Positions 3,681 to 40,088 of a stretch of 64,000 nucleotides of DNA are shown piece by piece (positions within the stretch are counted from its first letter, which is position 1; the number at the start of each line of letters is the position of its first letter). The stretch spans positions 193,633,741-193,697,740 of the forward strand of contig CM041465.1 of the NCBI GenBank assembly GCA_023213395.1. The letters run 5' to 3'. The notes beneath the pieces were generated by a model, which saw only the letters and a list, made by a program, of their open reading frames with translations, had not been told where the DNA came from and did not search any database. Made by a program: the position numbers and the translations under genes. This DNA comes from Cycas panzhihuaensis. Its lineage: Eukaryota > Plantae > Cycadophyta.

Positions 3681-3689
3681 TTCATCCTT

Positions 3690-4260
3690 TTATAATTGAT
3701 AATACATTTTATGATGGTTGGATGGAATATGGTCACTTTCTATCCATGCTTTAAAATGATCTAGGCTTCACTATTTTTAGTGATAATAGAATATAACAAG
3801 GTTCATACATTCACTTCTTCTCCTTTTCCTAGAAATGCAACACATGGGCTTGTGTAGTAAATATATAATATGGATGCTATCTTACAAAAATATGTATGGA
3901 AATCAAATTTACTAAATTTACCTAGGCTTTAGGTAGCCTAGATATTGGTAGCCCATCTTAAGTGTTTATGTTTTTGAGATCATCTTCATTAAAAAAGATT
4001 TTGAGAAATTCAATAAGACCAAACTAGTTACCTTTAGTGAATAACTCCTTTCCTTTTACCCTTATTATTAGGGCTTGCACAACTAATTCTAAGGTAAAAT
4101 AGATATTATTCACATAAACTTAAGTGTTTCCTTTGTTAAAACCATGAATAAACTAACTAACCTACTTTAGATATAATCAAGATTCATATAGTGGTATAAA
4201 CTATATAGTCTAAACTTCTTTAATGAGGCCTCTAATTGAGGATCCTTATCAATCATAACT
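3690..4260 (-). pseudogene. Cargo ORF remnant, putative plant-transposon accessory domain (ATHILA ORF1/Transposase_32-like)
   Basis: IDKDPQLEASLKKFRLY..FIHGFNKGNT*VYVNNIYFTLELVVQAL..KGKELFTKG..DGLPISRLPKA*VNLVNLISIHIF..LLYSII..IFHPTIIKCII matches the motif order I recognise from accessory ORFs of seed-plant gypsy elements. Confidence 0.55.
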
Positions 4261-4619
4261 CATGAATCCATCTCTATTTGAATCAAAAAAACCTTCTTTG
4301 TATTTATCTTATTATTTTATAAAATAGAACATAATAGAATCTTTTATTTCTTAACTATATTAGCCTTATGACCTTCTTCTAATTCAACCTTCTTTCTCCT
4401 CACTTCCTTATTCCCTTGTTCTACATCTCTATCCTTAATTTGATGTGCTACATATTTACAATCTTTAATAGAAGGTTTCTAGGCCTTTACTCTCTTATTT
4501 CATTTAATCATAAGCCTATTATTCTACTTCAAGGCATTGAATACCCTTTATTTAGTCCATTTACTAGTAGCCTCCATAGGTTTCTAAACTATTGTAAGCT
4601 TAACATTTCATTATCCAAT

Positions 4620-4990
4620 TGATCATGCATGTTTTTAATTATAGGTCCATCACTTCCTTGTATGACAACCTTTACATGTCTCTTACCTATAAGACCTTCC
4701 TTCTTCCTCTAAATGCTACTTATAGGTTCCTCTCATTTCTCTATGACATCAACTGTAGGCTTTATAGGCTCCTTACATTTTCTTAAAGTACCATCTATAA
4801 CTTTCTTAGTTATAGACCCCTTGAATTTCCTTGTATCACTACTTATAGACTTATTACATATTTTTATAACATAACCTATAAGCTTCATAGCTGTAGGTTC
4901 CTTTCATCCTTTTCTAGGATCACATATAAGCTTCTTAGTCACAAGTTCTTCATTTTCCCTCTTTATGATCTTTTCCTTTCCAAGCCTATA
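4620..4990 (-). repeat. Lys/Pro/Glu-rich degenerate coding repeats (EP.xKKP.G-like linker) in cargo ORF
   Basis: Recurrent gaacc/gagcc-tata/taca...aagaagc units on minus strand; translations EELVTKKLI, KEPTAMKLIG, KEPIKPTVD, EEPISS. Confidence 0.45.
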
Positions 4991-4999
4991 TTTTGTATA

Positions 5000-5850
5000 A
5001 TACCTTTCTTCATCTTGGGTTTTTTTTCATGTACCAAGTTTGAATATGCTACATGCTTGCCCTCTTCCTTCTCACAAGGTATAATCAAAAGTTACCCTTT
5101 CTTTAAGTAATGATATATATACATCATAGAATTTATTGTAATAATTACATTTTCTTTTAATTAATCACATTAGCCTTTTTTAAATATATATTTTTATGAT
5201 ATCCTCCCTAGTGATTAATTATATCAGGTCCTAATGCATAACTAAACTTAATTATTTATAATGTTTGCAAAATGGAAAAGACATTTATAACCATTTTTCC
5301 TTCATCTTTAGACTATGATGTCAGGGGTTATCATAACATCATCAAATAACATACTTACTACACTCCACCTATGTATAACAACTTAAAAGCACCTTGAATG
5401 ATCTTTCAAACTTGGCTAGAGCTCATTTGGTTGCTTGGTAATTCATTGCCCCCTACTTAGGATCAAAACAAAAGTATGCTACATCCAATGTTATTGTCAT
5501 GCTGAAGATCTATATCTATTACAAAGGATTATCCTTTGTCTATACTGTTGGTATAACTTTTAGATTACCCTCATCTATAATCAACGGTAGTTCCCATTAT
5601 ACATTATTATACTACATGAATTTGCTCTTGTGATTGATTTTAAAAATTTATTAGTGGAGCTTATAGACAACTAAAAGGTTGTCTTTATAATCAATACTAA
5701 GAATCACTGGTTACCCTTAAGTGCACCAAAGGGTAAATTAATGTACTAACATTCTAACTCTTTAGATATATAGAATAAGTAAAAGTCAACTACATTTGAG
5801 TAACTCACCTCCACACTTAAACAGAAAGGGAAATCCTACATTCTAATTCC
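5000..5850 (-). pseudogene. Cargo ORF remnant with ParB/sulfiredoxin-like motif
   Basis: One frame reads M*DFPFCL..SKELEC*YINLPFGALKGNQ*FLVLI..IIMYNGNYR*L*MRVI*KLY. NGNYR is two transitions from DGNHR. After a frameshift: LDVAYFCFDPK*GAMNYQATK*ALAKFERS..YT*VECSKYVI. Confidence 0.45.
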
Positions 5851-5874
5851 TATAATGACAAAATTAGAAGGGAT

Positions 5875-7409
5875 TAAACAAGATAAATTATAGCTTGTTG
5901 TAGTAGTATACAAATGAAATGCTTTTGAGAGGTTGGCTTCTTATATAGCTTCAACTAGTATTCATTTATGAATATTTGTTATGCAATATTATATATTGAT
6001 TATAATGTTAATTCTTAACTGTTAAAGACCTCAATCACTCCACATGGCCCCAACCATTGACATTGAAACTTTCTAATAAAGTCATTATATCTTGAGTAAA
6101 AATGAAGGGCCTAGTCCCTTACTTTGAAATGTTTTTCTCAAATGTATCTATCATGTTAATAATTTCTTTAACTTTGAAAAATGTTAGACCTATAATAAGC
6201 CTACTTTCTAATTTCATATAATTCATGGATGTCCTATGATCTTTGTTACTAGGCCTCCATCAAAGCCATATTTAGTTGACTAGTTGTTCATAAAATCTTC
6301 ATTTCAAGCTCAATGGGAATGATAACATGTTTTTTATATATGAGCTTAGATGGGATATATCTTATTATGATCTTCCATATGGTAAAATATACTCCAAGTA
6401 TCTCTAATAGCCTTTCACCTTAATCTCTTTAATGAAACTCAATTATTTTCATAATGAACTTCTTAATCTTTTAATCAATAACCTCTACTTATCCTTTAAC
6501 TTGAACATAATAAGGAGTGGAATTTTTAAGTTGATCCAAATGGGTCAACCATAATTATTAATAAATGCTTGAATAATCAAATGGGGCTAGTCTCCAAGAC
6601 TACACATGTGGTGCCTTGAAAAGAATTCCAAAGATAGTTTTGATAAACTAATGATAAACGATATTTAATATACAAATTCAATGTGTATATATACATAACT
6701 AATGGATTTTCATGAGGAGGCACAACCTACATTATAACCATTCCTAAATAATAATTTAAAAATAATTTCTTAATTAAATACATAACAATAATCACCATCT
6801 TAAAATACTTTGGCCTTGAAGCATTGTTAAAAAATGATAGCCAATAATTATCTCTTAGATATAGGAGAATGTCATATTCATCATCCTTATGTTTTGAAGT
6901 AGTTATTCAATGATATATAATTCATCATAGACTCCTAAAATAAGGTAGTATTATTAAAATTGGATGTTAGGGATTCTTTCATTTAATTATTCTATTAGAT
7001 TATTGATATGTTCTTAATTTCTTATAGATTTTATTTTATTATTTATTTCGTGTTACTTCTTGAAAAGTTGTTGATAGAGGTGTATCCACTAAGTAAACCT
7101 TTAATATGTCCTCTTATATGTCAAATATTAGGACCTATTTTGAATGGTTAAGAGATGAGATTATTACTAATAGAATGTTAAGTATATAATCTATAAAACA
7201 TGGGTTGTAAGTTGCTTTATCTTATTCTAAAAATGGTGTTGGGCATTTGATATATTTTTCCATAGGCATGTGATCTTGTTGAACCTTTAATTGACTATAT
7301 ATTTCTAATTTTCTTGTTCTACATATTCATTTATAATTTATTTATGCCATTCTTCTAGGTTAATTGGAGGTATAATAATTTCTAATTTTGCCTTTTGTAA
7401 TTTACACAT
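5875..7409 (-). pseudogene. Degenerate RNaseH-like + integrase-like pol remnant (no gag, protease or RT seen)
   Basis: Clear integrase motifs: DILLYLRDN (~6870), IM*VVPPHE (~6725), NSTPYYVQVKG*VEV..RD*GERLLEILGVYFTIWK..PSKLIYKKHVIIPIELE, HFKVRD*ALHFYSRYNDFIRKFQCQWLGPCGVIEVF (GPY/F module), INEY*LKLYKKP. The upstream WKNISNAQHHF..YLTYK..RFT*WIHLYQQ weakly resembles the gypsy RNase H C-half. Confidence 0.75.
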
Positions 7410-10194
7410 TTAAAAGTGACTTAAAAAATCAATTTAAAAAATACACAAAGAACAAAGTGCAAAAGTACTCTTTATACTTCTACCCTTCACACGTCATGCA
7501 TTTAAGACCATAGTAAAGAACTAACTTAATGAATTTTATAAAATAAAAAAACATAAAAATTCACTGAAAATATGAATTGATAGCTCAACTTTAAACAACT
7601 ATACCTTCCTCATTTGGCATTTTATTTTGGAGTTCTACCACTTATTTTTAAGGTTTCAAAATTCTCTTTCATATAATTTAATCATATTAGGCTAGAAAAT
7701 AACCTAAAATACTAACTTATCACTTCAAATTTAGTGAAGTTTCTCAAATTCATAACTATCAAGGTACCCTACAATTTCAAATTAAGAGAACTTTCCTATT
7801 TGGTGTGTAATTATTTACTTATACCATTTTTTTTAAGGTATCAAAAAATGATCTACCATATTTTTTATAACTATCATGCCAAAATCAAACCAACAAGAAG
7901 AAAATATCTTGGAAATACTCTATTATTATACTTTTCTAACCTACACCAAACACTAGCTTATGAATCCCTAAGATTCACAACCTATTATTTTTCCCTTATT
8001 AAGCTATTATTTAAAATTGTATTAAATGCAACTCTATTCTTATTAATTGATAATTATGACTTACATATTTAGAGAAAGAAAATACAATATGTTCTTTGCA
8101 TGATTATAATGGATTTTAACCTTCAAAATATGATTATTTCAACATAACTAAACTATCAACCAAATGGTGCATCCTTAAACATCAAATAGAGCATAGAATA
8201 AGCTTCCATATTATAAATAGGATATTTTAAACTAAATTATAGAAATGAATACATTAGAAACTATATTACAAAGTCAATATAGAATCAGGTAGTTACACCT
8301 AATATTCCTTATAGTGGTCTCTAAATGTTTAAAGGGATTCCTACTATCTTAGAGAAATTCCTTAGCATTGAACTCTTAAACTAGATAGAAAAATATTGAG
8401 ATTTATTCAAAATTTTTATCATAGAGTTTGCAAATATTAGAAGCTCTAAGAGCTAAATATGACTTTGTCACATCCAACCTATCTAATAGAACTTTACAGG
8501 AAATGAATAATTCCTTAGTTGATAGTATATTCTCAAATCTATACATACCACTCCTATCTATTATCGAAATTTTGGTCTTAGAATAGTTGTAAAATCCTCT
8601 AAGACATTCTATCTCCATCATATACTCACTCTTAGAGTCTCCATTTAATATAAAATACTAAAGAGATTTTGGAATATGAATAATTATCCCTCTATGTAGA
8701 ATTAAAATTTTAAATGACTATATAAAGTACCTAAATGATCAAACAAATATATTTTGGCTTGGTTTTTCATATAATTTGGGATTATAACAAACACTGGGTT
8801 ATTTAAAATGAAAATGTAAAATGCTTCTTGTCATATATTTAGATAGAGAGACTACTAAAAATCTAAATGGTCATGCACAATAATTAGCCATTAATACAAT
8901 ACTAGTAAATATAATAATTTATATGTTTGGGTATGAAGTTGCATCTTTAATGAGGCAATTTTTGAGCTTGATGGATAAGATATTATCCATATATAAATAT
9001 TTTTTTGTTACACTATAAAATTCGTTAATTCTTAATTATGAATATGAATAACTCACATAGCCATTTCTTATTATCTTTTGACCCATGTTCATTACATTCT
9101 AAACCATCATTATTAAAAGAAGTGTTATATAAAGTAGTATTAGATTAATTTCTATCTATATCAAGAAGAATAGGTCTCTTTCTACCAATTAGAGATAGGA
9201 GGAACCTTGTAAAGAGAGCAAGAGACTATAGATCCCATGTTGATCTAGCCCTAACTTAAAAAATAATGGGAATCATTACTTTGCAAGGAAAAGCTTATAA
9301 TAATAGCCAAGGTTAAGATGCTTGAGGTTTATTTTTAATAATAGGATGGCTTAAAACATAGTGTCAAGACTCTTAAGGTATGGGACCAAGTTATCATTAA
9401 AAGGTAAAGTCTTCTAATGGAAGATAATGTAGTGGTTGAGGTTGTGAGATACCATCTTACAACATGTGAGATGGTGAACGATGCTAGATAATATTTAATC
9501 CAAGATCTTGTTTTAGATTATTTCCTTTCTTATGTGTACTAGGGGTCTTATTATATACACTTCTTCATGTATTAATTGTTAGTTGATTATATGGTTCTTG
9601 GTGTATGATTGGACACCCACATAATAGCATGCACTATAAATATGCATTATTTTATAATGTAAATTGGAGATGATCATTTTCCTAAAAGAGTTATATTATG
9701 TTTTGGTGCATGTTTCATTTATCTTGTCATGTATGTAGTTATTGTATCTTTGACATATTTGTTATTATACATTGATGATATTAAATTATGTAATTTTTAG
9801 CATAGTACCAAACTTATTATCTGATATTAGAGAGACCTTAAGACTATAAGTATATCCCTTTATCTATGTTATTTAAGACTTATTTTAAGCATATTTATCG
9901 TGATTAGTAAGAGGGGTTATCTTGTCTAAGGTGAAGTGTATTATATGTTAGTAGGAAGGTTATCCAACTATAGTTTTTACATGTTACCTAGAGCACCTTG
10001 ATATATATGCCTAAATCATGTTAGTATGGAAGCCTAAGTAGTATGTTGGTACATGTATCTAAGAAGCATGCCAGTGCTTAAGCCATTATAAATACAATGA
10101 AAGCATAGGTATTATAGTTATTCAAACCCCACAAAGATTGACATCATAGTTTTATTTATTTATTAGATTATTTTCTTTTACATGTCAAATGGGA

Positions 10195-10260
10195 GTATGC
10201 ATGTATGTATACAAACACACACACATACAGAGATAGATAGATAGAGAGAGAGAGAGAGAA
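10195..10260. repeat. Compound microsatellite (ATGT)/(CA)/(GATA)/(GA)
   Basis: Directly visible. Confidence 0.9.
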
Positions 10261-11699
10261 ATAGAGTTGTTTATTATCTATGGATGAAGCCTTTGGTATA
10301 GGATTAATCACCCTATCAAAATAGTTTAACCCTTTACTTTATTGAATGCTAGGTTTGTTAGGGTTCATTAGTAAATTTTTGAATGTGTGAAGTTTATGTA
10401 TGGTGGAACAACTATATTTGGCTCTTGTTTTTAGTGATGTAGCATTTTATTGATGAATTAAATATTAAAGCACCTTTATTTTGATAAAAATGTTAAATCT
10501 ATAGTAAAATCTTCACCTGATGTGGGGTTTCCTACTCTTGAATGACTACATGCCATGTTTACGGATTTGTTGATAAGTATAGGATATTGGTAAGTGTACA
10601 CACTAAGATTATTAATATTTTAAGACCCTCATGATAGATGGATAAAGGTTTGGATAATTAGTTTGAAGAATTAAGCCTATTTTTCCTCCATTTTGATGAT
10701 ATTTTCTAAGTTTTCTACTTTTTGAAAGGGTAGCATAGTTTACACTAGGCAAATTCATTATTAAATCTATAACTAAAGACTTATTTTAGAAGACAATATT
10801 GATCCCAAGTTCTCTTTTAGGCTACGATGTTCTCCTCACTTCCTGAGTGTGTTTTGGTGTGAAATGAGCTCATTTCTCATTATTTTTAAAATATAAGGGT
10901 CTACAACTTACTAAAACATGTTGATATGAGATTATTTTAGTTTTTTACGACCTTATTTTATGAGAGATCTAACCATAGATCTCAATTTATGTTAGGAAAC
11001 CTCCATGAGAAATTACCATTTTTCTCTATATTCAAAACATTATTCTTCATACTTTTTACATTAAAGTAGGCCACTAGGATATGGCATAAAGCTAGAGTTC
11101 TAATGGTCATTTTTGCTATTACATCAATCAAAAGTGGAGGGTATATGTTGTCAAACCATGCATAGGTCATCATAATTTGGTAGTTAAAGATTATTAAATT
11201 AATTTACTTTAAAGTTATCTAAGGTTTATAATTGATTTAATCATACTTAATTTTAGTTTGAAGTTTGTTATGCCCCTCTTAAATGGTTATTTAATGATAA
11301 ACTATGCTAAAAAGGCAATGCTAATGGGGGCCAAAACCCTTTTCCCTCTTTTTTCATGATTTGAATAACATGTGCTCACAAAAAATATTGATAATTTTCT
11401 CACATGAAGTAAGAATTTAATTTTTCCTCTCAAATTAGAGACCTAACCCATATAGATTCATAATGAGTGGTTAAATTACATGATTTGAAGACTTTTAATA
11501 GTAGATTTTAATTCTTAAAGTTTTAGTAGTGGTTTAACATGGTGTTATTTGAGTTAAAAATGGAACTTGTGCCTAGATGAAAAGTCTTTTTCCACATGTT
11601 TTTACTTAAATAACCATTTGTGCAAGTTTGATACATAGTTTAGTAGATGGGGTTATGGGTTTTTATCTTACATTTCTCCTTATGATGTAAGAGAGAATA

Positions 11700-21749: not shown

Positions 21750-24700
21750 TATTAACATGGAAATTGTTTGTTAATATACTAAGTTAATTTTCATGTGGTT
21801 TAACTAATGGTGCTTAGTGAAAAGATGTGAGATATTTAGAGGGTCACAATCCTTATTAGGTGACACCTCTTGAAAGGATATATATATATCCTAGAGCCCT
21901 TGTATTTTTATATATCAATTAGTATGTAATCAATATGATCCAAAAGGATATTTTGTGGTGGGTTTTTTCTCAAAAGGGTTTCTTGCGTAAACCCTATATA
22001 CTATGCATAAGTATTCTATATTTATATTTATATGCTTACTGTGTATGGTTAAAGATTCTACAGATAAGAACATACATGTATGACTTGATATTCCTAAATA
22101 TGGTATTAGAGCCATAAGATCCTACATAGTTGAGGATGAATGTTGAAGAAAGTAGTGTGATCATTAGTTGTCAGGTGAAGCCATCAAACCCAAGAAATAT
22201 CTTAAGGGTCTATCAACTCTAACAACATGTAAAAGTAAGCATAGCAAATCAATGGTGATTGGGGCAATAAAAATCACTAATCAACAAAAAATAAAGGTTA
22301 GTTGTGATTAATATTCAAATATGCAGGCCACAAATATGGAAAGAGGTGGCTCATTGGAGATCATATGAAATAGGTTGGTAAATAAACATATTATTAGAGA
22401 TAATAGAAGTACATATCCATGGGGATCAAATAATATTAAGTATATCCATATTTATATATATATAAGTTAGTTATTTCCTCAGTAAAAGCATTATAAAATT
22501 CAATGAAAATAGGCCTATTTTACTACCTTTTACTATTAAATCTCCTTTTCACACCTATGGACATGATTGGAGCTATGTATTAGTATTTGTTTGTCTATAT
22601 ATAAGTGTTGGATTGCATGTATAACAATAGTAAGTGTTAACCTTAATATCAAAAGTTATTTTATTAAATTTTGGCACCCTTATTTGAGTTTGGGTCTTTA
22701 TTTCCGCACTGTATATGTGAAATAAACCTATAAAAGACATGGAAATATTATCTAGGCTCTTATTAAGGTGGTTGGGCTACATCTAGAAGATCCTTACTAG
22801 TCATAAGGGCAGGAGGAGTGCACAAAGGGTCGAGCAACCTATGTTAGTCATGCGAATGTCATGACATTATATATTCACTCAAGAAGGTTAAAAGGATATC
22901 AAAGGGTGTATTTTTAATATATTTAATCTTATTAACCTTTGTTTAACCTTATAACATGTCAATCTTTGATATTAGACATGTGTGTTAAGTGATATAAGGC
23001 ACAAGCATATTAAAATGCTACACCTTTTAGAATATACCTTTTGGCATATTCCCTCCCAATGTAACTTTATAAAAAGGCCCTTTTTTACCATTGATACATA
23101 AGATATTGCATAGTGTGAAGATATTTGAAATATTATCAAGTCATTTTGAGTGTTATTCAAGGATATTTATTGTGATTTCTAACTTAGAGATTGTGTCTTA
23201 TCACTGTGAGATAATTTCCTTGGTCCTTGGAGTAAAGTCTTAAATATTTCATGTGATTTTTTAAGGCTTTTTGCACACTATTAAGAATATTTTAAGTCCT
23301 TTTATGAGGGGAAAGCAATCAGTGAGTTACCCAAAGTATGCATAGTCATTATTTGGGGCTCCCCGAGAGTATGTGCTTGAGCTAAAGGAGGCCAAAATGG
23401 TGCAATTTTATTTGGTAAGTTTGTAAGACCTTCATTTGGTATTGTTTGAACCATGTTGAAGCTTGTATCTCAAGATGGATTGTGTGTTATCGAAGGTTAT
23501 CTTCAACAACAATAATTTTAGCGAGTAGAAGGCCAACATAGAGCTTGTTTTAATGGTGAACCAAATGTTGGAGTTAATCATCATCACTCCACTCCCACCT
23601 TTCTAACTAGGATTATACACCTTATCAACTTCAATTTAGATATGTGATGCTCAACATGTCAAGGTAATTTAAGGTAAGTTTAACTTTGATTTATGTTAAG
23701 TTGAGTTAGTTTCATTTGAGTTAAGTTAATATTATTTTATTATTATTTTGAATTCAGGGGTTAAGGAGTTTCCCTCCTCCCCCAAATTATAAATATTGAG
23801 GGGAGTACAACTCTGGTGTCTTTAGACACCGCCCTCATTTAGGAAATTTATAATGCTTGCTTCTCACAATGTAATAACTACAATGGATTTTTAGTTTATA
23901 CTACATTAATATATTGCAATATTGATCTATGCGATTTTATTCTATGTTATACCCTATTCTCTTGCAAATATATTTTCCTTCATTTGGTATCAGAGTGAGT
24001 TTTTGCTGATATGTGAAGTTTTTCAAAAAAATAAGAAGATTTTGAGGCAGATATATTGAAATATTCTTCATTACAATATTGAGCAGCCATAGGCTCAAAT
24101 CTAAAAGCTCAATATATGAATGACATTTTCTTTCTATTTTTGAAAACATTTTGAAATTTTTTATAAAATCTAGAGTACTCAGCTTGGGCACCTTCAATAG
24201 ACTTCTTTGGCTCAAATCTAGAGCTTACATAAGTGATTTTATGTTAGTTTTAACTCTATGCTTCTCAAGTATTGACTTCTCTCACAAAATCCACCAAATA
24301 CTTAGCTGATACCATTAATAGATATCAAGAAATTTGTAAGGTGGATGTCGCATTAACCTACTGTAGCCTCATTTTTTAAGCTATTATATAGCCTTTCTTC
24401 CTGAAGATTTGCTTGAGAATAGTCTTTGAAGGCCTGAGCTTTGTAATGAATATTTTGAGAAAACTGGGCTGTTGATTAAGCCTTTGTAAAACTCATTATT
24501 ATGACACAAGCTTCTTACATAGCTTGAACTATTTTGCTGCCAAAATCCCTCAACACAACCAGTAGGCTTCCCATCTATCTTCACATAGCTCATTGATGAA
24601 GAATAATACTCTAAAAAATATAGTTTGTAGGGCATGAGTATTTACAGAAGTTGTTTTTGAATCAAGCAACTATTATAGAATCAGATGATCCAAGAAGCAT

Positions 24701-24805
24701 AAAGAAAGAGAGTAAACTTTTAATTGTATATATATAAGTGCGAGAGAGAATATCAATCACTGAAACATTTTTTTTGGATGCAATTGAGGTAATCGCCTCC
24801 TTGCA

Positions 24806-27800
24806 TGTAACATAACCTCACCTTTTCTTAGCAAAAGGGAACCACTAACAAGTAAGGATTAAGGGGTTTAGTAAGTTATGTATATGGACCACTAAGTCAT
24901 CCAATAAGATGTAAGGCCGCTAGGGCCACCAATAGAATCATTAAGGATGATGACCCTTACTTGTATATTTAAAGGGTTAAACCACTCATAATGTTATTAA
25001 GGATGATATCTTGAAAGGAGAAAGTACTTCGGTACTCATTTTGGTGATTCATTTTCTATGATCCGCTTGTGCATTCATGTTATTTGGCTTTATTTTCTGC
25101 TAATTATCACTTCTACGAGCCCTGGTTTCTGAGAAGGAATGGTCCAAGTGGTATCAGAGCTATGTTCGCGATCATGGGAAGCTGCCCAAAATAGTAATTT
25201 TTTTTTTTCCTATACGATTAAGTACTCTCTCTACCTAGGCAGAGATTAAGAAAAGAACTTCACTCAGTACTCTCTCTAAGAAGATTAAGGAATGATAGCA
25301 AGATAGATTAGAGGTCACGAAGCGAAGGGGAATTTTGACCTTCAGGTACCACAAGCAATTTATTTCTTCTAAACTTAATTCAATTTTTAAGCTTTCTTTT
25401 TCTGCATTGGGTTATATTCCAAGGGTAGATAACACCCCTGGGCGACTACCCTTTGTGTCCTCTCCCACCTCTCCTTTCTGGGTAGATAACACTACTAGGC
25501 GGCTACCTAAGTAGTTAGGTAGAGACCCTGTACCAGGGTTCTTTAAACATCACATGGATCTATCGATTTTAGCTAAGTGCATCGTGGCTTTGTTGGCCCT
25601 TGTGTGAAGGACTGGAGACAACACTCCTGAACCAAGCCCTAGACAGAACCTAGCTACGAAAGTGTGCCTCCATGTACCTCCAGGTCTATAGGAGGACCCT
25701 CTTTAGGATTCCAAAACCCTCCCTAGTACAGGTAACCTATCGGTCACTGAAGTCTTGCAGTGTAGTGGTTGCTTGATTAGTGCCGTGAAGTTACACCGCC
25801 TCTTCGCATCAAGTTTATCGGTGCCTATAAGACCAAGCACACCTCATTCTGCAGTGGGTAGGATACATCTGATCATTCGCTGCTTACCCTGCCCTAGTCT
25901 TTATCACAAGCCACTAACTGCCTGAATTCAAAACTTGTTAGAATAGTCAAGCCTCTAAAAAAAAAAAAAAATCTACTTAGCTCTTGCTCAAAGTGCAAAA
26001 AAAATACCCTTATAACTCATACACCTCAATTCGATTAGCATCTTGTAAGGGTTGTTTTGCATTAGGTTAGTCTATACCTCAATTTTCACTCTTTTTGTAT
26101 CTGGGCCACTAGTGGGCCCCATCACTCCAAATTCACCTTAAAAATCATACATCCCATTTCGATAAGTTTTTTGTGCTCTTTTTAGTGGACTAAATATCTT
26201 GCTTATGTAATTTTAGGGTCAATAGGTTATAGACACCCCACATTCCCCTATTTTGCCCCTTCTTTCCCATATAGCAACTTCCTATTCTTCTATCCCATTC
26301 TTTCTTGAATCTGTCCCACTTCATTCTTTCCCTTCTTTCTACTTACTCCTGCTTCCTTAATCCCTTTCTTCAACTCCAATGGCAAAAAATCAAATAGAAA
26401 AAATTTCTGAGTTGACCAATGATTTGTCTAACTTCAAAATAGAGGTCAGCAATAAACTCAGTAGCATGCCTACCAAATCTGACCTAGATGACACTAAGAA
26501 AGAGATTATCATATTGCTTCAACAGTGGGTGTCACCCCAACCCCAAAGCACAGGAGCTTCTACCTCAATGGGCAACCAACCTCCCCCTTCTCCAGGAAAC
26601 AATACATATACAGGAGGTTCTCCACCAAGACAGTCATTTTTCCACCATAAGATCAACATTCCTACCTTTGATCCAGACATGAATAGAGAGTGCACTTGAA
26701 GCTGGATTAATAAGTTAGAATCCTACTTCACTCTCCACTCGATGTTAGAAGAGGACCAACTCTTATATACTTCCATTCATTTAGATGGTCGAGCTCACCA
26801 TTGGTTTAACTGGTGGAAGCGGGAATACCCCTCTCACTAAACTTAGTCCCACTTCACTAGTTGTTTTTCGAGCAATATGAAGATACATGGAGTTAATATT
26901 TTTTCACACAACTCACCTAGCTTAAGCAGACATCAACTATAGAAGCTTACACAGATGAATTTCAAGCTTTATATAATCACATGCCATAAAGACAAAACTT
27001 GGACAAACAAACAGTGATTGATATTTATGTGACGGGACTCCAAGACCATATTCAGATGAGATTAAAGATAATGGCAATTTACTCCCTTAAGGAAGCTTTT
27101 AAGTGGGCCCGTGTAGTAGAAGCTGAGTTTGTAGTAGACAAACCCTCAACCATTCGACGGGATAACTCTTGGTTCTCATGCACTTGACAAGCAGATCTCC
27201 ATGCGATCTTGACCTTGATTTGATGATGCCTCTCGTCCTCAAGCTGACTTCACACATCTTTGACCATGACAGGATGATTCTCAACCATCTATTGATCGCC
27301 AGAATGAGGATATATCCACCAAAAGAGTCCAAATTTCTCAAGCTGAAGCACAACGTCAACTTGAGGCTAGCCTTTGTATACAGTGTATAGAAAAGTGGAC
27401 TTCCGGGCATGGTCATTTTTGTAAAGTGTGGCGTATAGTTTTCTCAATTGACCCATCTCTCTTCCCTGACGATCCCTCTGATTCTGACTCTGACCAGGAG
27501 GCTGATGATGAAACCCATGATGATCCTGCACCAGACCCCTAACCTGAAGTATTTATATCTGCTATCACCACCTCCTCCTGCCCTGAACCCTTAAGAGTTA
27601 GAGGCATTCTCTACAAGACTCTAATATCTATCTTGATCGATGGTGGCACGTCACTTAACTTCATTGATATTTCGATTGCTAGACAACTTAACCTATATAT
27701 TGTCCCAAAAACTGGCTTCACCTGTTCTCTACTAGGGTACTAGAAACTCCATTGTGTAGGTGTTATTAAAAACCTCTAAGTCCAAATTGGCTCATACCTT

Positions 27801-30800
27801 TTGGTGTCAGACTTCTATGCCTTGTCAATAGGAGGATCTGATGCCATCTTAGGGATTCAATGGTTGCAAACACTAGGGACCTATAACACGAACAACTCAC
27901 CTACAAATCCATTCATTGCCTTTAAAGACCACATGGGGTGAAACCACAAAATTTACGGAATGTAATCCCCCCCTAACCAAGTGGTCTCTCCTGGACGTAT
28001 GAAATGCCATCTTCAATCTCACCTAGGGTATATAGTCTGCCTCAATAATATTCAAATCGAACGACAAATTCATCCCTACATCCAGGATGTCATTACCCAA
28101 TATGAACAAGTATTTGCCCCTCTTCCTGCCACCACCCGTCCTGACCGCAGTTTCTTTCATACAATTGACGTCCAATCTAACCACGACCCTATCAACCTTT
28201 AACCTTACTGTAACTCATACTTCCAAAAGAATGAAATCGAGAAACTCACAAATGAACCCCTTGACATGGGCATAATCCAACCTAGTAAAAGCCCTTATGT
28301 AGCCCTAATTGTCTTAGTTTAGAAGAAGGATGGCTCCTTTTGCCTCAGTGTTGACTATAGGGAATTAAATAAGATTACCATTAAAAATAAGTTTTCCACC
28401 TCTTGCATAGATGACATGCTAGATGAAATCCATAGCGCAACCATCTTTTCTAAGTTAGACCTCTAATCTGGTTACTACCAAATCCCAATTGCCCTACTAG
28501 ATTGTCATAAGACAACATTTCGCACACATCATGGCCATTTTGAGTTTCAAGCAATGCCCCGGCAACCTTCCAAGCTCTCATGAATAGAATCTTTGGGCCC
28601 TACCTTCGAAAGTTTGTCATAGTTTTCTTCGATGACATTCTTATTTATAGTGCTGCTCGATCTCCATATCCAACACTTAGAAATTGTTCTTCAAATATTA
28701 TAGAACCACTAACTCTATGCAAAACTATCTAAGTGTGAGTTTAGACAATCAAAACTCAAATATTTAGGTCATATCATATCATCAGAAGGGGTATGTGTAG
28801 ACCCTGACAAAATATCAGTCATCACAATATGGCCAACACCTACCACTCTTACCCAACTAGGAGCATTTCTTGGGCTGACAGGCTTTTATCGATGCTTTGT
28901 GCATAACTATGCTTCTCTTGCCACCCCATTAACTAACCTCCTTCGTAAAGAGGCTTTTCAATGGTCTCTCGAAGCAGAGGTTGCCTTTTCCCACCTTAAG
29001 GTTGTAATGACCTCCACTTTGGTCCTCATCACTCCTGATTTTAACCAACCCTTCCAACTTGAATGCGATGCTTTGGGGTTTGGTTTAGGCATAGTCCTAA
29101 TACAAGACTCTCATCCCATTGCATTTGAAAGCCGAAAATTAAAAGATCACGAGCTTCATCTCTCTACATATCAGAAAGAAGTGAAGGCTATTCTCCATGC
29201 TATTGATAAATGGCGGCAATATCTCTTAGGCTATAAGTTCACTATTCTTATGGATTATCGTAGCCTCCATAATTTATTAACTCAGCCAGTCTTATCTAAA
29301 GAACAAGCTAAGTGGGTTCATTGATTACAAGTCTTTGACTTCTTAATAGCATATAAAAAAGGTAAAGATAATACAGTGGCAGATACTTTTTCACGTCTCC
29401 ATCTTAACAACAATGTTCCTAACCCAAGCCTCCATGCCATCAGCAACCCCCAACCCCTTTGGCTTGATGAACTATGTGTTGAAAATCAAGCCCAGCCAGA
29501 CTATCCTAATTGGAGGGAAAAAGTTCTCACCCATAAAGGTTGGTCAACCTTCAACAACCACCTCCTCTACCACAATCGTATCTTTGTCCATCCCTCCTCC
29601 TCATTCATCCCTAAAATCCTAACGAAATACCACTCGTCCCCCCTTGGCAGCCACTCTGGCTTCGATAAGACTTATTGATGGATTCATGCAGATTTCTTTT
29701 GGCCCCACATGAAGACCACCATATTCACCTTCATATCAGAATGTGACACCTATCAATGAAATAAAGTAGAGACCAAACCTCTCCCTGGCCTTCTCCAACC
29801 ATTAAATATTCCGCAAGGTAAGTGGCAAGATATTACCATGGACTTCATCACGGGCCTACCCCCATCTATCGAGTTTGACTCCATTTGGGTAATCATTGAT
29901 CGATAAACCAAGTACTCACACTTTCTCCCAGTGCACACCTCATATTCATCCTCCCATCTCACTGACTTATATGTCCAATTCATATTTTGCCTCCATAGTT
30001 TTCCATCATCTATTGTTTGTGACCGAGACCCTAAGTTTACTAGCTCCTTTTGGCAAGAACTCTTTAAGACTGTTGGAACCTTATTTAACATGAGCTCTGC
30101 CTACCACCCATAAACAAATGGCCAATCTGAGGTTCTAAACAAAACTTTAGAAACTTATCTACATTGCTTCACTTGAGAACACCAAGCTAAGTGGACCTCA
30201 TGGCTTGCCCTGGCTAAGTATTGGTATAACTCCTCCCATCATTCTGCCATTGGTATGTCCCTCTTTTTTACTCTTTATGGCTACCACCCACCTTCTCACC
30301 ATACCCTAGCCATAGATTTTAGAATAGCTTCTATGCAACAAAAGCTTCAAGAAATGGATCAAATCTCGCATGCCCTTCGATAAAATCTAGCTAGTACTCA
30401 AAATCGAATGAAGTAGCTAGCAGACTGCCACCGATCTGATTGATCCTTTGATATTGGAGATCTAGTATACCTCCGCCTCCAACCTTATAAGCAACAATCA
30501 CTCAAGTCCCATCAAGGGCATAAACTAAGCCCCCACTACTATGGCCCTTATAAGATCTTGCATAAAATTGGTGAAGTTGCTTATGCCTTTGAACTCCCCC
30601 TAAATACTAATATTCATAATGTCTTCTATGTGTCTTGCCTAAAAAAATACCTTAGAGCTAAAGTTACACCCCACACAACCCTTCCTATTCTCTCTAAAGA
30701 ACAAACTCTTACAATTCCTCCTAATAAAATCCTTGCTAGTTGCAAGCATCACCTCTAGAATCATACTATTTCTAAACACTTGGTATAGTGGGTCAGCTGC

Positions 30801-31236
30801 AATGTTGATGAAGCTACTTGGGAGTCAGAAGAGTTCATCCAGAAACATCCTCATCTTCAACGCTGCAAGGACTCAGCATCTCAAAGGAGGGGACCTGTAA
30901 CATAACCTCACCTTTCCTTAGTAAGAGGGAACCACCAATAAGTAAGGATTAAGGGGTTTAGTAAGTTATGTGTATGGACCGCTAAGTCGTCCAATAAGAT
31001 GTAAGGCCACTAGGGCCACTAATAGAATCATTAAGGATGAAGACCCTTACTTATGTATTTAAAGGGTTAAACCACTTGTAATGTTATTGAGGATGATATC
31101 TTGAAAGGAGAAAGTACTTTGGTACTCATTTTAGTGATTCATTTTCTGTGATCTGCTTGCACATTCGTGTTATTTGGCTTGATTTTCTACTAATTATCAC
31201 TTCTACGAGTCCCGATTTCTGAGAAGGAACGGTCTA
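24806..31236 (+). mobile_element. Full-length Ty3/gypsy chromovirus (Reina-like), pseudogenised
   Basis: 341-bp LTRs 24806-25146 and 30896-31236; PBS tggtatcagagc 25149; PPT aaaggagggg; TSD ttgca/ttaca. Confidence 0.96.
26379..30898 (+). pseudogene. gag-PR-RT-RH-INT-chromodomain polyprotein remnant
   Basis: [85 protein letters not shown] running into PPT/LTR. Confidence 0.95.
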
Positions 31237-31575
31237 TTACATTTATCCACCTTTCTCGGCTGTATTTACAAATTGTTAGAGAAACCACAGAAACTGTGCA
31301 ACTAGCATTACATTAAATGACTCATTTTCGAGCTCCAAAAATTTACTACTATCCCTTATTCTCTTATTTGCATTATTGAGGCCACATATAAATAAATTAA
31401 AAAAAAAAAAGGAAAAGAAAGAAAAAAGGGAGGGGGTTATCAATCCCTCCATTACATAAGCATAACATTTCACTTAGCCTTTTTCTAAAAAAGCTTCATA
31501 GCTTTCTACACTATTACCTCCATCTTCATCCCTAAGGGGAGGAAGTGAAAAATACAAAAATGTCCTTCATTTAAC

Positions 31576-31979
31576 TAGAAAGGCACCCTTAGTGCAGTTG
31601 GCACTACTTCAGAAAGGGACCTCCCCTCTTCATATGGGGTTGTCTTTGATGCAGATCTTTTTGCAATTGTATGGTTTTTATAGAAGAGAGCCTTCCTTTG
31701 GTAGCTTGTATCATTGTTTGCAGATATCTAAAAGACTTTGTAGGGCTTGAAGCATGTGGGTATGTGGACATTGCCTACCCTTATTCTAAAACTGACTCCA
31801 CTTGAAGGAACAATGTGTAAATAGTGAGCTACAGATGATTGCCTCTATTACTTGCCTTCTCTGCATCACCTTATCCATACACTTGACCACCGATTCACAT
31901 TTTAGACTATTACAGCATTTATGAATGGGAACTTCGTAGATATTCATACCAGCACATCCTCTATTTCTCTACTTTTGTC
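31576..31979 (-). pseudogene. Unidentified coding-like fragment joined to the POLQ piece, followed by UTR-like sequence
   Basis: Frame continuing from POLQ: DKSREIEDVLV*ISTKFPFINAVIV*NVNRWSSVWIR*CREGK..VAHYLHIVPSSGVSFRIRVGNVHIPTCFKPYKVF..RSLSEVVPTALRVPF*. Not the POLQ C-terminus and not TE-like. Confidence 0.4.
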
Positions 31980-32492
31980 CAAGTAGTGCTTCCTTCCATT
32001 AAGGGTTCTTATATACCCTTTTTTTGCTGGTGGATGAAACACTTGGAAAGGCATTCTTGAAACGTTCATGCCTTTTTGCAGCTTCAACTACAGTACATTC
32101 TAGTTGTTCTACAAAGGTATTGATACCCATGCCATACAATATTCCATAAACTAACATTTTGGTTTGATTTCTCTACTTCTCAGTTATTGCAGATTCATTC
32201 TGCCCTGTCCATCTTGCTACCATCATACAGAAAAGAACACCATCTAGATTCCTGAGAAGACTAATTAACGAAGCATCAATAAACAAATGAGCCATTATGC
32301 GTAATTCTATTTGAGAATAGTTTGCTGACATGAACAACCAATTTTCTTGACTAGGAACAAAAATATCATGTGCATTGATTTGGTACTGGTCAAACGTAGC
32401 AGTATCTATTCCAATCCCATATTAGGTCTAATTGTGAAATCCACTTGATGCTCTACATGCTGGAGGTTAGGCTCCTCCATAGAAAGCCTCCC
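31974..32492 (-). pseudogene. TEB: Captured, intron-less fragment of DNA polymerase theta (TEBICHI/POLQ) A-family polymerase domain
   Basis: GRLSMEEPNLQHVEHQVDF..QINAHDIFVPSQENWLFMSANYSQIELRIMAHL..MVARWTG..RNQTKMLVYGILYGMG..EQLEC..FKNAFPSVSS..KGYIRTLNGRKHYL. Includes PolA motifs A (DYSQIELR-type) and B (R..K..YG..YG) with plant TEB-specific flanks; 2 frameshifts, 1 stop, short deletion. Confidence 0.93.
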
Positions 32493-32719
32493 TTAATTAC
32501 CTCCAATCCGCCCTATATCAATCTGGTTGACTTACCATTGCAGAGGCGCAGGTGGCCCATGGTAACGTTTAAGCAGGAGCAATAGACGGTGCGTATCGAA
32601 TAACACAGACAGTGCGCAGCCAACAACACAGCAAGGTGGTAGGCATATCATCATGCAGGTTTCTCTGGCATTTTTTTAACGTTCGACGCGCCTTTTCATT
32701 CACTTCTTTTTTATATGTA

Positions 32720-33482
<763 letters not shown>

Positions 33483-35021
33483 TATTTCATATTGGGATTC
33501 TTATTGATTTAATAATCATCTTCATAGTGAAGTGTGGTTAGCCGTTTTTCTGTTTTAACAGTGGCGGCGATGTTTTTATTATCTATATTTAAATAGTTTT
33601 TTATAAAGTTTTTTAAAAAATTATATTATATAGGCCAATTAAAAGTATTAGCCCCTCGCATATTCAACCCCTGGTCACAAGACCATTCTCACGTGACCGT
33701 AGTTAGGGCCAACAAAAGTTTATAAACCATTTTCCATTTTTTTTTTTTTTTTTACATAGGGTTATTGGTGTTTTTTTGCCATAACTACTCACTTATTCAC
33801 TGGTTTCTAACGAAACTAGTGTCATTGCATTATAAATTTTCTTTAGATTAATTTTGACTAGTCATATGACCAATTTGGTGTTGATTTGACCCCGTTTCAG
33901 TCGATTTAAAGTCAATCAGTCATTTTTTCAGCATTTTTTTAACTTTTTACAAAATCACTTTTTGAACTGATTATATTCTATTATAGGGTTACTATTTTCT
34001 ACCTGGATTTATTCTAAAGTGATCTACGTTTAACAAAATTCATTACCCATTTTTTATTTTATTTTTTAGAATTTATTTTGATCACTATTTTAATCGTCAA
34101 AAGTGTCACTTTAGTGGTTTTCAGCATTTTTCTTAACATTTTACCATAAAGGTACCTGTTGCCATTTTTGCTATAACTTTTCTATTTGACATCCAAATTT
34201 AGTTTTATTAGTTTCGTTGGGAAGTTGACTCATTCCACTTCGAATTGATATAGTTTTTTATATGTTTTAATGTATTTTTACTAATTTTCAAATCACTCAA
34301 AGTAGAGGTATTTAATTACCTCCAACTTACTATTTTTACACATATATATATATAATTTTTTAGCTGAAAGTATATTGAAAAGTCTTCTAAACAATATTTA
34401 ATCATTTCTCAATACTTTGTAAAGTTTTATTAGCAATTTTATACTTTTTGAGCTCCCTACTCCCTTTAATTCTAAAAAAGAGGCCTGTTTATTTGACTTA
34501 TCAAAACTTAACTTGTAGAAACCCATTTTCAAAACGGTTAGTTCCTTTGGATTCATATTTTATTGATCTTCATACTAGTGAAGTTTTATATTCTTCTGAC
34601 ATCATTTAGCATACTTTTGAAATTGTTAAACTTGAGGTTATTCTCTCACCCTTCTTTTTAAAAGGTTTCTTCATACTCTTTATCTTTCAAAGTAAAATAT
34701 ACATATATTTCAGTTTCTTCAGTATCATATATTATCATCAAGGCTAAGGATTTATTGCATTAAGAATTTACATTTATCCATTTGAAGAAAATCCAAAGCT
34801 TAAGGTCTTATTTCAGATTTGTATCGTTAAAAGAATATTGGTGTATGATTTCAAAGTTACTTCTATATTCATTATTTCCTTATTGCATTTAGTTCATTTA
34901 TTTTTAAAAGGCATTACATTTCTTTTGAAGAGTATATTTGATATCATACAAGTTTAGTTACTTATTGACTTTATTTGATTTACTAAAAGCATACTTTATA
35001 TATTCTAAAGTTTTTTATAAT

Positions 35022-35531
35022 ATGGTACAATTATCTATATTTGATGGGTAAAATTTTTTAGAATGGCACAAAATTATGAAAAATTATTTTATTGCATATG
35101 ATCTATGGAAGTATTTACAACATGACTATGATGTTAGTATTAAAGAAAACATTAGAAAGGATAATAAAGCATTGGGATTATTATTTTGCACTATGAATGA
35201 TGATGTTTTTTCAAAGGTTTCTAAATTAACAACTTCTAAATTAGTTTGGAATGTATTGATTTCTACTTATAGGGGAGATACCCTCCATGTATTTGATGAT
35301 ATTTTTTATGAGCATGTGAGACAGGTGACAAAATAGGTGAAGCATAACGACAACACCCATGAAGATCCATATCAAATACAGGACCAACTTACTATACAAG
35401 TATCTGCTCCTCCATTTGAGGGGGAGGATGAATGCTATGACATGATGGAAAATGAATCTGATATAATAAAAAAGGATTATTATGATATGACAGTTGTTGA
35501 CAGCATACACATTACAAAAGATAAAGTTTAA
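35022..35531 (+). pseudogene. Truncated copia-type gag N-terminus (DUF4219/UBN2-like) with acidic tail
   Basis: MVQLSIFDG*NFLEWHKIMKNYFIAYDLWKYL..KDNKALGLLFCTMNDDVFSKVSKLTTSKLVWNVLISTYRGD followed by a D/E-rich tail; no zinc knuckle. Confidence 0.85.
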
Positions 35532-36187
35532 ATTCAATTTTTTCTCAATGTTCTAGTTGACAAAGACAAAGTTGCATCTATATATACCTACTTGAATTAA
35601 GTATTATTTACTTACAGCTTTTTCTAATTACTTCATGATACAAAGACATATGTTATAAGAAGGTTAAAGCATGTTGATGAAGATTAGATTTTTAAAGTTT
35701 TTTTTTAAGTACAAGTTCCATAAGTTTAAAGAAAAGATTCAAGTATTCGTGATGACATTAAGGGAGAGAATGTTGGAGTTAATCATCATCACTCCACCCC
35801 CACCTTTCTAACCAGGATTGTACACCTCATCAACTTCAATTTAGACATATGATGCTCAATATGTCAAGGTAAGTTAAGGTAAGTTTAACTTTGATTTATG
35901 TTAAGTTGAGTTAGTTTCATTTGAGTTAACATTATTTTATTATTATTTTGAATTCAGGAGTTGAGGAGTTTCCCTCCTCTCCCAAATTATAAATATTGAG
36001 GGGTGTGCAACCATGGTGTCTTTAGACACCACCCTCATTTAGGAAATTTGTAATGCTCACTTCTTACAATAGAATGACTATAATGGATTTTTAGTTTATG
36101 ATACATTGATGTATTGTAATATTGATCTATGTGATTCTATTCTATGTTCTGCCCTATTCTCCTACAAATATATTTTCCTTCACCAAA

Positions 36188-39100
36188 TATATGGAATTAC
36201 CAAGATAAAGGTTGGCTTAGTTTTTCTTGACTATAAAAAGTGCATGAGACTGGAAGAAATGTAATTTATAGCCTTAGGATAGTTGAAATTACCCCTAGTT
36301 CTAGACTAAAGAGCTCTAGTTAATAACTTAAAATAACCTGATGAGATTTAGATAAAATTGTGTGATACTTTTAAGAAAAAAAAAGACAAATAGATGCCTT
36401 GCTCTAATATTAGAGTTACTCAATTTGCATGTGGAAGATGCGAACAATATCAATTCTTACCTGAATAAGATTACAAACTTAAAAGAATAAGCTAGAAGAA
36501 CTAAAATAGAATTTGATTGATGATGTATTGTTATTTGCTATAATCATGTTAAAGCTACCTACTGCCTTTTCCACTTTTTAGACCATATATGGTAAAGATG
36601 AGGTGATGGAGGTAAAAACTTTTGATGGTCTTAAAAACCTTATTCTAGTAGAGGATGCCAAACTAAAACATCATGGTATGCTTGGAGGTTTTGAATCAAG
36701 CCAAGCTTTAGCCATAAAGACTCAGAGGAAAGAGGTCACTTAGGGGGAAAAGTTCACATAGAGGTTTAGAGAAAGTTCTTAATAAAAGATGAAATTCAAT
36801 GGAAAATATAACTACTATAAAAAGGATAGTTACAAAGAGAAGAACTATTGGATTGAGAGATGTGACAAGTGTAAAGTAATCCAAGATAACAAAAGAAAGA
36901 GAGTTGCAGCTTACTACATCAGGATAGAAACCATATCAGCCAAGTCTAATCAAAGAGATTATTAGATTCTTGACTCTAGAGCATAGAAGCATATCTCTTA
37001 CCAAAAACACAAATTTGATATAATGAATAAAAATCTTAGTGGTGTTGAAATCATCCTTGGAGATACTTGTATATTGATAGTGGAAGGTATCGATGAAGTA
37101 TGTATTATAGGTGGTAAGTTTACCAGGTTATATTGCATACCCAAGATGTAATTGAACCTTCTTTTAGCCTAAGAGATTTATAAATAAGGTATGAAGGTGG
37201 AGTTATACCATATCAGATGCCAGATAAAGGATTTGAAGTAAAAGTTTTCTGTCATTATTACTAGGAAAGTTAGAGGCAACTTTTAGGTGTCTCAAAAATT
37301 TTAATCTTAGAAGAAGTCTTATGCCTTTGTCACCAGCACTAATGATGTGACTAAACTTTGGCATGATCGCGTAGGACACCTTAACTATAGAAGCAACACA
37401 TTACTAAATAGGTTAAAGATGGTAAAAGGATTGCCATAAATTTCTTACTCAGATAGTGGGTGTAAAGGGTGTATGTATGGTATGCATCATCACTACCTTT
37501 TTACTCAACATAATGTATGGAGAGATAATGAGAATCTAGAGTTTGTGCATTTGTATATAATGGGTCTTTTCCTAAACCCTTCGATATCAGGAGCTTGTTA
37601 CACCCTTATGTTTGTGGATGATTATACTAGAAAGGCCTGGGTTTACTTTTTGAAAAATAAGTCAAATATATTTGATCACTTCTATGACTAAAAAGTGATG
37701 GTTAGTCAGGATATAAAATTCAATAAGTCATTGGTGTATCATATTGATAAATCATTAAAAGAGTTTTTTTACTCGATGTTACTTCCATTCCTAAATTCAT
37801 CAGGCGAAGAGGACGATGAGCCAATCATTGGAATACATGAAGAAGTAGGACCAAGTGGGTCAAGTAATTGTGAGGAGCCACCATAAGAAGAAGCACCTCT
37901 AGTAATGGGTTCTTCTATACCATTATAGGCAAGGAAGACTATTAAAGATTTTGGTATGGTGATGCATACCATTACTAATGAAATAAAAACAAGAACCCAT
38001 CATGCTAGTTAAACTCTACTGGTAGACACCCACAACTCTAGTGATCCTAATTCATTTGATAAGGCAAAATGAGATCCACAATGGAGAGATACAATGGAAG
38101 AAGAGTATGGTTCATTGATAAAGAATAATACATAGGATTTGGTTCTACTCCCTCTAATGAGAAACCTTGTTAGATGCAAGTGGTCTATAAGATAAAGTTT
38201 TACTTTGATGGAGGGGTGGACAAGTATAAGTCCAAGTCTATAAGGAGACATTTACACCAATCCCCAAGATGGTAATGGTCTAGTTAATCATTTCCTTAGT
38301 AGCTAATTATTGTTAGGAGTTACATTAGATGGATGTCAAGTCCATATTTCTTAATAGATATCTAAAGAAGGAAATATACATGTCATGGGCTTTGGGATTT
38401 ATTAAGGAAGGCTAGGAGCATCTTATATGTTGATTAAAGAAATCAATTTATGGCCTAAAATAAGCACCTAATGCTTGGTGTGAGAAGATGGATGCCAAGT
38501 TAAAAGCTAAAGGTTTCGAAATTTCTAAACTTGACCCAAATTTATATATAAAAAGAAGACGGACTTCAATAGTTGCTAATGTGGTTTATGTTGATGATTT
38601 AATCATCAATAGTAATTGTGGCAATACTATAGTAAAAGTTAAGTCCAATTTAGGAGCTTCTTTTAATATGACAAACCTTAGGATACTTCACTATTTCTTA
38701 GGCATTTAGATTAGGCAAATGGATGATCGAATCATGTTGTTATCACAGTATGTGAAGAACTTACTAGAGAAGCTTCGAATGCAAAATTAAAATCCTATTA
38801 CAATATCATATGTTAAAGGCATAAGATTATAGAAGGATATAGTCAAACCCTCTATAGATAGAACAAAGTATTGCCAATTGGTAGGGAGTCTAATTTACTT
38901 GACTCATACTAGACCAATTATTGCCTATGTTATTAAATTAGTATCCTGATATATGTGGAATCCTTAAGAGCCTCATTAGGTTATCATGAAGCAAATTCTA
39001 AAATACTTAAAAGGGATAATCAATCTTGATCTTGAATACTATGAAAATAAGAAGATAAAGTTGCATGGCTATATAAATGCTAATTAGGAAGGTGATTATG

Positions 39101-39500
39101 ATGATTAGAAGTCCATTGTTGGATATATATTTAGTGTTAGTAATGGATTTATTTCATGGCAATAAAATGAACAATAAATAATAGCACTATCTTCTACAGA
39201 GGTTGAATATCAAGGACTTTGTGCTAGTGTGAAGGAAGCTACATGGTTACAAAATCTCTTAGAGTTTCTAATGGATATCTAATTATCTTTATTAATAATC
39301 AAAGTACCATTCTCCTATCAATGAATTAAGAATTTTATGTGTATATGAAGCATATCAAGATTTAGTGCCACTACATCTCTAAATAGATTAAGTCAAGGAA
39401 GTTGCAGGTTAATTACTATCTAATTAAATTCTAGTTTATGGATGTGTTCACCAAGACTCTTACTGAAGATTAATTCACAAAGTTGTATACTAGATTATGA
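36188..39500 (+). pseudogene. Copia gag-pol remnant (gag split by insertion at 23566-36182; integrase internally deleted near 37690)
   Basis: Y*ILDSRA*KH (protease), LWHDRVGHLN, FVDDYTRKAWVYFLKNKS, *MDVKSIFLN, VYVDDLII, ALSSTEVEY; copia order PR-INT-RT-RH. Confidence 0.93.
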
Positions 39501-40088
39501 CTTATTAATGTTATCCTTGAGGGAAGATGTATCAATAAGGATAAAAAATTTGTAGGATAGTCTCATCCTTCATGATAACATAATTAGTATAGGTTACAAG
39601 CTCCTGACATTCATATTAAGGGGGGATATTAATATGGTAGTTATTTGTTAAACCACTAAGTTAAGGTTCATCTGGTTTAACTAATGGTGACTATTAAAAA
39701 TATGTGAGATATTCAGAGGGTCACAACCCTTATTGGGTGATACCTCTTGAAAGGATATATATCCTAAAGCCCTTATATTTTTGTATATCAATTCGTGTAT
39801 AATCAAGGTGATCCAAAAAGATCTTTTATCATGGATTTTTTCTTGAAAGGGTTTCTTATATAAACCATGCATATTGTTCATCTATATTCTATATTTATAT
39901 GTGTATGCTTATTGTGTATGGTTAAAGATTTTGTAAATCAAAACATACATGTATGATTTCATGTTCTCAAATACTTCTTACTATTCACCTACTGTAAGAT
40001 ATATGAGATGCACACATATCCATGCTATCTCTTTATCAGATGATGTAATGGCTCATTGTATTTGATAGGCTAGTCATGAGGTGATTTC

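Follow-up and report, generated by a model that had tools for sequence, protein, structure and literature searches.

The stretch of DNA analysed in the present study (the window, 64,000 nucleotides at its full length) holds a dead pseudogene fragment of TEBICHI/POLQ, which has no function and which lies between the LTRs of a retrotransposon. We consider it probable that this fragment is a processed copy, carried in antisense orientation by a non-autonomous copia-type LTR element, amplified together with the repeat, and decayed independently from copy to copy. No function is needed to account for its presence. The fragment, referred to below as the cargo, is the following:

31974-32492, minus strand: TEBICHI/POLQ polymerase-domain fragment, 519 bases or ~180 codons, with motifs A and B

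Translation of the minus strand gives GRLSMEEPNLQHVEH, FVPSQENWL, ANYSQIELR, YGILYGMG and KKGYIRTLNGRK. A polymerase-domain reading with motifs A and B had been made for this interval in the first-pass annotation; the strings quoted there were recovered, and both Pfam and tblastn agree with it. The Pfam model DNA_pol_A matches the two larger stop-free pieces of the cargo, with E-values of 5.9e-12 (above the cut-off) and 3.2e-8. Three reading frames make up the cargo, namely 32492-32421 (GRLSMEEPNLQHVEHQVDFTIRPN), 32415-32032, which lies past a frameshift and includes motif A ANYSQIELRIMAH and motif B QTKMLVYGILYGMG, and 32024-31974 (KKGYIRTLNGRKHYLDK), which lies past a second shift and the loss of ~10 codons (Taxus residues 1121-1130). 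In addition to these two frameshifts and the deletion, one in-frame TAG stop is present at 32175-32173, between motifs A and B, and the motif A Asp is replaced by Asn at 32322-32320, giving the ANYSQIELR string quoted above. Neither motif C nor the helicase domain is present, and the cargo thus lacks the combination of motifs A, B and C in an open frame by which a working polymerase is recognised.

The source gene is identified by several comparisons. Residues 968-1147 of Taxus chinensis TEBICHI (KAH9300440.1; P0001), a partial helicase-plus-polymerase protein, align exactly to the cargo in a tblastn search against the whole window (E 1e-57, 66-79% identity). The same protein is the best match of an 82-residue cargo piece among 1.84 billion representative proteins (65% identity, E 1e-23), followed by TEBICHI proteins of Arachis and other angiosperms, Riccia and streptophyte algae; all protein searches were run per stop-free piece and never through a stop. 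The best relatives (TEBICHI-type proteins of Taxus, Arachis and Riccia) are 1250-2235 aa long, and a separate search with the 82-residue piece, restricted to proteins of similar length, returned no homologue. Bacterial Pol I chains in the PDB match the cargo only at E 5e-7 over 39 residues. A small tree was built from the cargo pieces, joined with X at each break, and from joined exons of a plant TEBICHI gene on a metagenome contig (L001, described below), the last exon of which was joined out of phase; cargo and Taxus group together in it at 96/96 support, a grouping that is independent of the L001 row. On the strength of the tblastn alignment, the best relatives and the Taxus grouping, the source was a gymnosperm-type TEBICHI gene and not another member of the PolA family; a TEBICHI/POLQ origin had been proposed from the motifs and their plant TEB-type flanks.

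The tblastn search with three TEBICHI proteins found no further TEBICHI pieces elsewhere in the 64 kb, and a decayed resident TEBICHI gene with TE-filled introns was rejected on this ground, as no further exons appeared. An apparent downstream continuation of the homology (..RRQVIEAIICSS.. versus ..ERQAVNSICQGS..) was likewise dropped, being unreported by tblastn at E 10.

Three nested LTR elements, all on the plus strand, occupy 21750-39973, and the cargo lies in the middle one, referred to here as the host element. Their features are as follows:

21750-39973, plus strand: outer, older Ty1/copia element with 351-bp LTRs (81% identity, K2P 0.214)
37473-38709, plus strand: RVT_2 and rve remnants of the outer copia element (Pfam)
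23566-36182, plus strand: host element with TG..CA LTRs of 417 and 412 bp (90% identity, K2P 0.095)
23566-23982, plus strand: 5' LTR of the host element (TG..CA), with the duplication CCAAA at 23561-23565
23985-23995, plus strand: primer binding site of the host element, TGGTATCAGAG, two bases past the 5' LTR, read from the alignment
24806-31234, plus strand: nested Ty3/gypsy element with 339-bp LTRs, primer binding site TGGTATCAGAGC and duplication TTGCA/TTACA (LTR K2P 0.096)
35022-35333, plus strand: copia-type gag N-terminal remnant, ~100 codons with one stop (Pfam Retrotran_gag_2, E 1.6e-11)
35760-35770, plus strand: polypurine tract AAGGGAGAGAA, directly before the 3' LTR of the host element
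35771-36182, plus strand: 3' LTR of the host element, with the duplication CCAAA at 36183-36187

The host element is structurally complete, in that TG..CA LTRs, a 5-bp target-site duplication, a primer binding site (which we take to be of the initiator-Met tRNA, iMet, type) and a polypurine tract are all present. Read from its 5' end, it begins with the LTR and primer binding site, an interior segment of 0.8 kb, the nested gypsy element and another interior segment of 0.74 kb. The antisense cargo follows, and after it come a 228-bp patch that has kept its CpGs, the (TA)n microsatellite (0.9 kb) and 1.5 kb of AT-rich sequence; the gag stub and a last 0.43 kb of interior lead to the polypurine tract with its LTR. 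The gypsy element holds RNase H and integrase remnants and is separate from the cargo. Its LTR divergence (K2P 0.096, against 0.095 for the host) indicates that the gypsy element is no older than the host element and entered it soon after the latter had inserted. With the gypsy element subtracted, the gag stub is the sole TE protein remnant of the host element, and no pol domain was recognised in the host's own interior among the longer stop-free pieces scanned with Pfam; a gag stub without a pol domain makes the element non-autonomous. LTR alignment and Pfam scan thus agree with the earlier placement of the cargo between the LTRs of a pol-less element at 23566-36182, in antisense to it. The description of this element as gag-only holds broadly, as no pol of its own was found, with the qualification that what is left of gag is ~100 broken N-terminal codons near the 3' LTR. 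The cargo lies 2.5 kb upstream of this stub, in an unusually long "leader" of 4.6 kb between primer binding site and gag.

The intron positions used for comparison come from a plant TEBICHI gene, with exons of both helicase and polymerase, on L001 (metagenome contig Ga0315914_1001657). The gene, at 2120-10990, is nearly complete and angiosperm-like (the C-terminal part of the helicase and the polymerase, in at least 10 exons); it is plant DNA from an environmental sample, in a contig filed as metagenome. In the part that corresponds to the cargo, L001 has three canonical GT-AG introns: intron 1 after ..PNLQ (phase 0), intron 2 after ..VPTQ (phase 0) and intron 3 inside the Gly codon of ..KG/Y.. 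(phase 2). The cargo reads through at each of them (32460/32459, 32347/32346 and 32017/32016, respectively), so that the three exon-exon junctions predicted in the first-pass annotation are crossed without an intron, exactly where L001 has one. The ends of other plant gene models fall at the same places: P0014, P0015, P0018 and P0023 start at Q/(E or D)NW, the position of intron 2, and P0005, P0015 and P0018 end at ..QKG, the position of intron 3. A gymnosperm-like fragment of 89 residues (P0002) starts MWLQ/ESWLL. An uninterrupted cargo where orthologues have introns very probably derives from spliced mRNA, a conclusion that draws its intron positions from an angiosperm orthologue and from the gene-model ends of other plants. 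By the same orthologues, the parent gene of the source genome would be expected to have introns at these three positions.

A DNA-level capture or segmental copy, whether from a parent lacking these introns or from a pre-existing processed pseudogene, would be a very unlikely origin. A retrocopy that already existed and was copied again would be indistinguishable from what is seen here, but many plant gene models place introns 2 and 3 where L001 does, intron 2 is also indicated in P0002, and both ends of the cargo fall inside L001 exons and not at exon borders. A processed pseudogene of the LINE type is also unlikely, because no poly(A) was seen downstream of the cargo where a minus-strand retrocopy would end, no target-site duplication was found flanking the cargo itself, and the cargo lacks the 3' portion of the mRNA. 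The lack of a duplication around the cargo bears equally on an independent insertion with a target-site duplication of its own, the event that had been named as incompatible with capture by the element.

The sequence on either side of the cargo contains the following features, none of which has an assigned strand:

31235-31973, no strand: non-coding flank from the gypsy insertion to the cargo, repeated together with the cargo in related genomes; no Pfam match
32493-32720, no strand: CpG-keeping patch of 228 bp, with CpG observed/expected 0.97 (11 CpGs) versus 0.18 for the whole window
32566-33485, no strand: (TA)n-type microsatellite of ~0.9 kb inside the host element, nearly pure with sporadic C/G

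The CpG-keeping patch abuts the 5' end of the cargo, directly upstream in the minus sense, and has no Rfam, tRNA or Pfam match over 32493-32720; candidate explanations are an unmethylated start site and a further captured piece. On its minus strand an ATG is followed by eight codons and a donor-like CAATG/GTAAGT, and the minus strand reads TTAAG/G exactly at the start of the cargo. Neither flank of the cargo has a Pfam match among its stop-free pieces, and no genuine hit came from scanning the cargo region for Rfam families and tRNAs; matches to mir-297 were rejected, as they are far below the Rfam threshold and correspond to the microsatellite. The microsatellite also yields spurious long ORFs.

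These surroundings bear on a different origin, in which the cargo would be an independent passenger of the element, either a cDNA patched in during double-strand-break repair or a minus-orientation unit (31450-32720 and flanks) that landed in it. We regard this as unlikely. The antisense orientation and the abnormally long distance from primer binding site to gag are as such a history would have them, and so is the G+C content, as the cargo sits within a stretch (31450-32720) richer in G+C than the remaining host interior, which is otherwise 23-31% G+C. No terminal inverted or direct repeats, poly(A) or duplication, however, bound either the cargo or the G+C-richer stretch; the search for terminal repeats around the cargo region returned only low-complexity matches and one exact 14-mer, TTAATTACCTCCAA. 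This 14-mer touches the cargo boundary at 32493-32506 and recurs 1.8 kb away at 34312-34325, which would suit an inserted unit, but by our own estimate ~0.5-1 such matches are expected by chance in an AT-rich stretch of this kind. The two copies bracket the microsatellite, and their placement relative to the junction is odd.

Copies of the region were sought among contigs of four low-coverage runs with three species labels, aligned to 30896-32560 (1665 letters) at a likeness of at least 80%. In each run, 5-14 distinct contigs overlap single positions inside the cargo. Summed contig depth, which is not copy number, is very high over the gypsy LTR and far lower and fairly even across 31344-32520, with no step at the edges of the G+C-richer stretch, a further point against a separately landed unit. 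Both cargo boundaries are bridged by contigs (one over 31974 at the 3' end, one over 32492/32493 at the 5' end), and all three exon joins are spanned (six contig records). The presence of cargo and both flanks in many diverged contigs indicates amplification as one unit after capture, before or across the split of the species labels. The aligned span, 30896-32560, lies inside the host element, and the repeat to which these copies belong is presumably this LTR family. Other contexts exist as well: one contig follows the flank over 31814-31977 to the 3' boundary of the cargo and is then unlike the window for 59 bases, and a pair of long contigs, 2583 and 910 nt in length and under two different species labels, share the same 46 differences and match the window over no more than 32176-32487. 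These point to copies of flank or cargo elsewhere than in the arrangement of the window, and they are the remaining observation in favour of an independent passenger.

Differences among the copies are overwhelmingly transitions, which together with a CpG observed/expected of 0.22 in the cargo fits long decay under methylation. At 32322, where the window copy has A on the minus strand, other copies have G and keep the motif A Asp, and after 32419, the exact site of the first frameshift in the window copy, they carry one extra base. The Asn of motif A and this frameshift are therefore private to the window copy.

The route by which the cargo entered the element is constrained by its orientation. 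Reverse transcriptase that switches to a co-packaged mRNA during minus-strand synthesis is expected to leave a sense insert. The cargo is antisense, and another route is therefore needed; a switch during plus-strand synthesis, a cDNA patch at a break, or a separate nested minus-strand unit could each supply it. The claim that the element captured mRNA by template switching of the reverse transcriptase accordingly divides: its mRNA-derived part is very probable from the intron-free cargo, and the template switching is not supported in its simple form, since an antisense insert misfits a minus-strand switch.

In its full form, that claim holds that a pol-less element took up TEBICHI mRNA by template switching in a virus-like particle and that its antisense transcripts feed siRNAs or methylation onto the host gene. 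As a whole this appears distinctly unlikely to us, more so than an independent passenger. It does account for a cargo that is intron-free, multi-copy, placed between intact LTRs and devoid of its own duplication or poly(A), and donor genes in comparable systems behave as it would have them: those of maize Sireviruses, whose captures have no orientation bias, draw more siRNAs and methylation (bioRxiv 10.1101/777037), and those of gymnosperms have higher exon methylation (PMC13477047). Set against this are the less usual route that the antisense orientation requires and the position of the cargo in the leader and not in place of pol, as in Bs1. A search for RNA runs containing the stretch found none. 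For the siRNA part, copies differ from the window copy by 5-15%, and few perfect 21-24-mers common to the parent may remain.

We therefore keep to the reading of an amplified and independently decayed processed fragment, the steps of which would be as follows. About 180 codons of the genome's own TEBICHI/POLQ polymerase domain would have been reverse-transcribed from spliced mRNA, and the cDNA copy would have joined non-coding sequence inside a non-autonomous copia-type LTR element in the opposite orientation, presumably either through a template switch onto packaged mRNA during plus-strand synthesis or through cDNA patched into a copy of the element. The chimera would have been copied many times as part of the repeat, and each copy would have decayed on its own, mainly through the transitions to which methylated DNA is prone. 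For the window copy, this decay would comprise a 1-base frame-shifting loss, a Gln-to-stop change, the ~10-codon deletion and the Asp-to-Asn change at motif A.

Theta-mediated end joining is a pathway that patches DNA ends. An amplified element family might make RNA antisense to TEBICHI/POLQ, from which 21-24-nt small RNAs might dampen or methylate this end-joining gene, and the patch at 32493-32720 could in that case be the promoter of a minus-strand unit reading into the cargo. We give this idea very little credence and place it lowest among the readings considered here. If true, a repeat family would tune a repair gene; an antisense or siRNA effect on a host gene is in itself a standard "epigenetic conflict" idea. 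The cargo matters little on its own. It does offer a clean, checkable example of an mRNA-derived host fragment that lies antisense in a non-autonomous LTR element and was amplified with it, and as such a test case both for how antisense, intron-free cargo enters LTR elements and for small-RNA cross-talk between such cargo and an essential repair gene.

The capture of host exons by LTR elements has long been known, from Bs1 of maize and from surveys of rice and sorghum (reviewed in PMC13317346). Like Bs1, the element described here is a non-autonomous LTR element that retains gag sequence and encloses, between its LTRs, part of a host gene without introns. In Bs1 the fragments are joined to gag in a hybrid frame that is transcribed and translated, implying the orientation of the element (PMC13317346), whereas here the cargo is broken, lies on the minus strand of a plus-strand element, and stands upstream of a gag that is reduced to a broken stub; a sense insert fused to or following gag was not found. 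A closer likeness in orientation is offered by the Sireviruses of maize, copia-type LTR elements that hold host exon fragments in either orientation without bias, so that an antisense cargo is not unusual in surveys (10.1101/777037). The same work, which includes small-RNA and methylation data, proposes siRNA cross-talk with the donor gene, and reports that Sireviruses mostly took 3' exons, while the cargo here spans internal exons (10.1101/777037). With a LINE-type processed pseudogene the cargo has in common that it is intron-free, reverse-transcribed and non-functional, and it differs in having no poly(A), flanking duplication or mRNA 3' end, with both ends within coding sequence. The nearest parallel is TE capture in the giga-genomes of gymnosperms, in which a 2026 comparative study counted ~400,000 captured coding fragments per genome, including copia and gypsy LTR cases (PMC13477047). 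The cargo groups with gymnosperm TEBICHI and differs from these cases in nothing of substance; it is an ordinary further case of the common gymnosperm type of gene-fragment capture, with POLQ as donor a curiosity.
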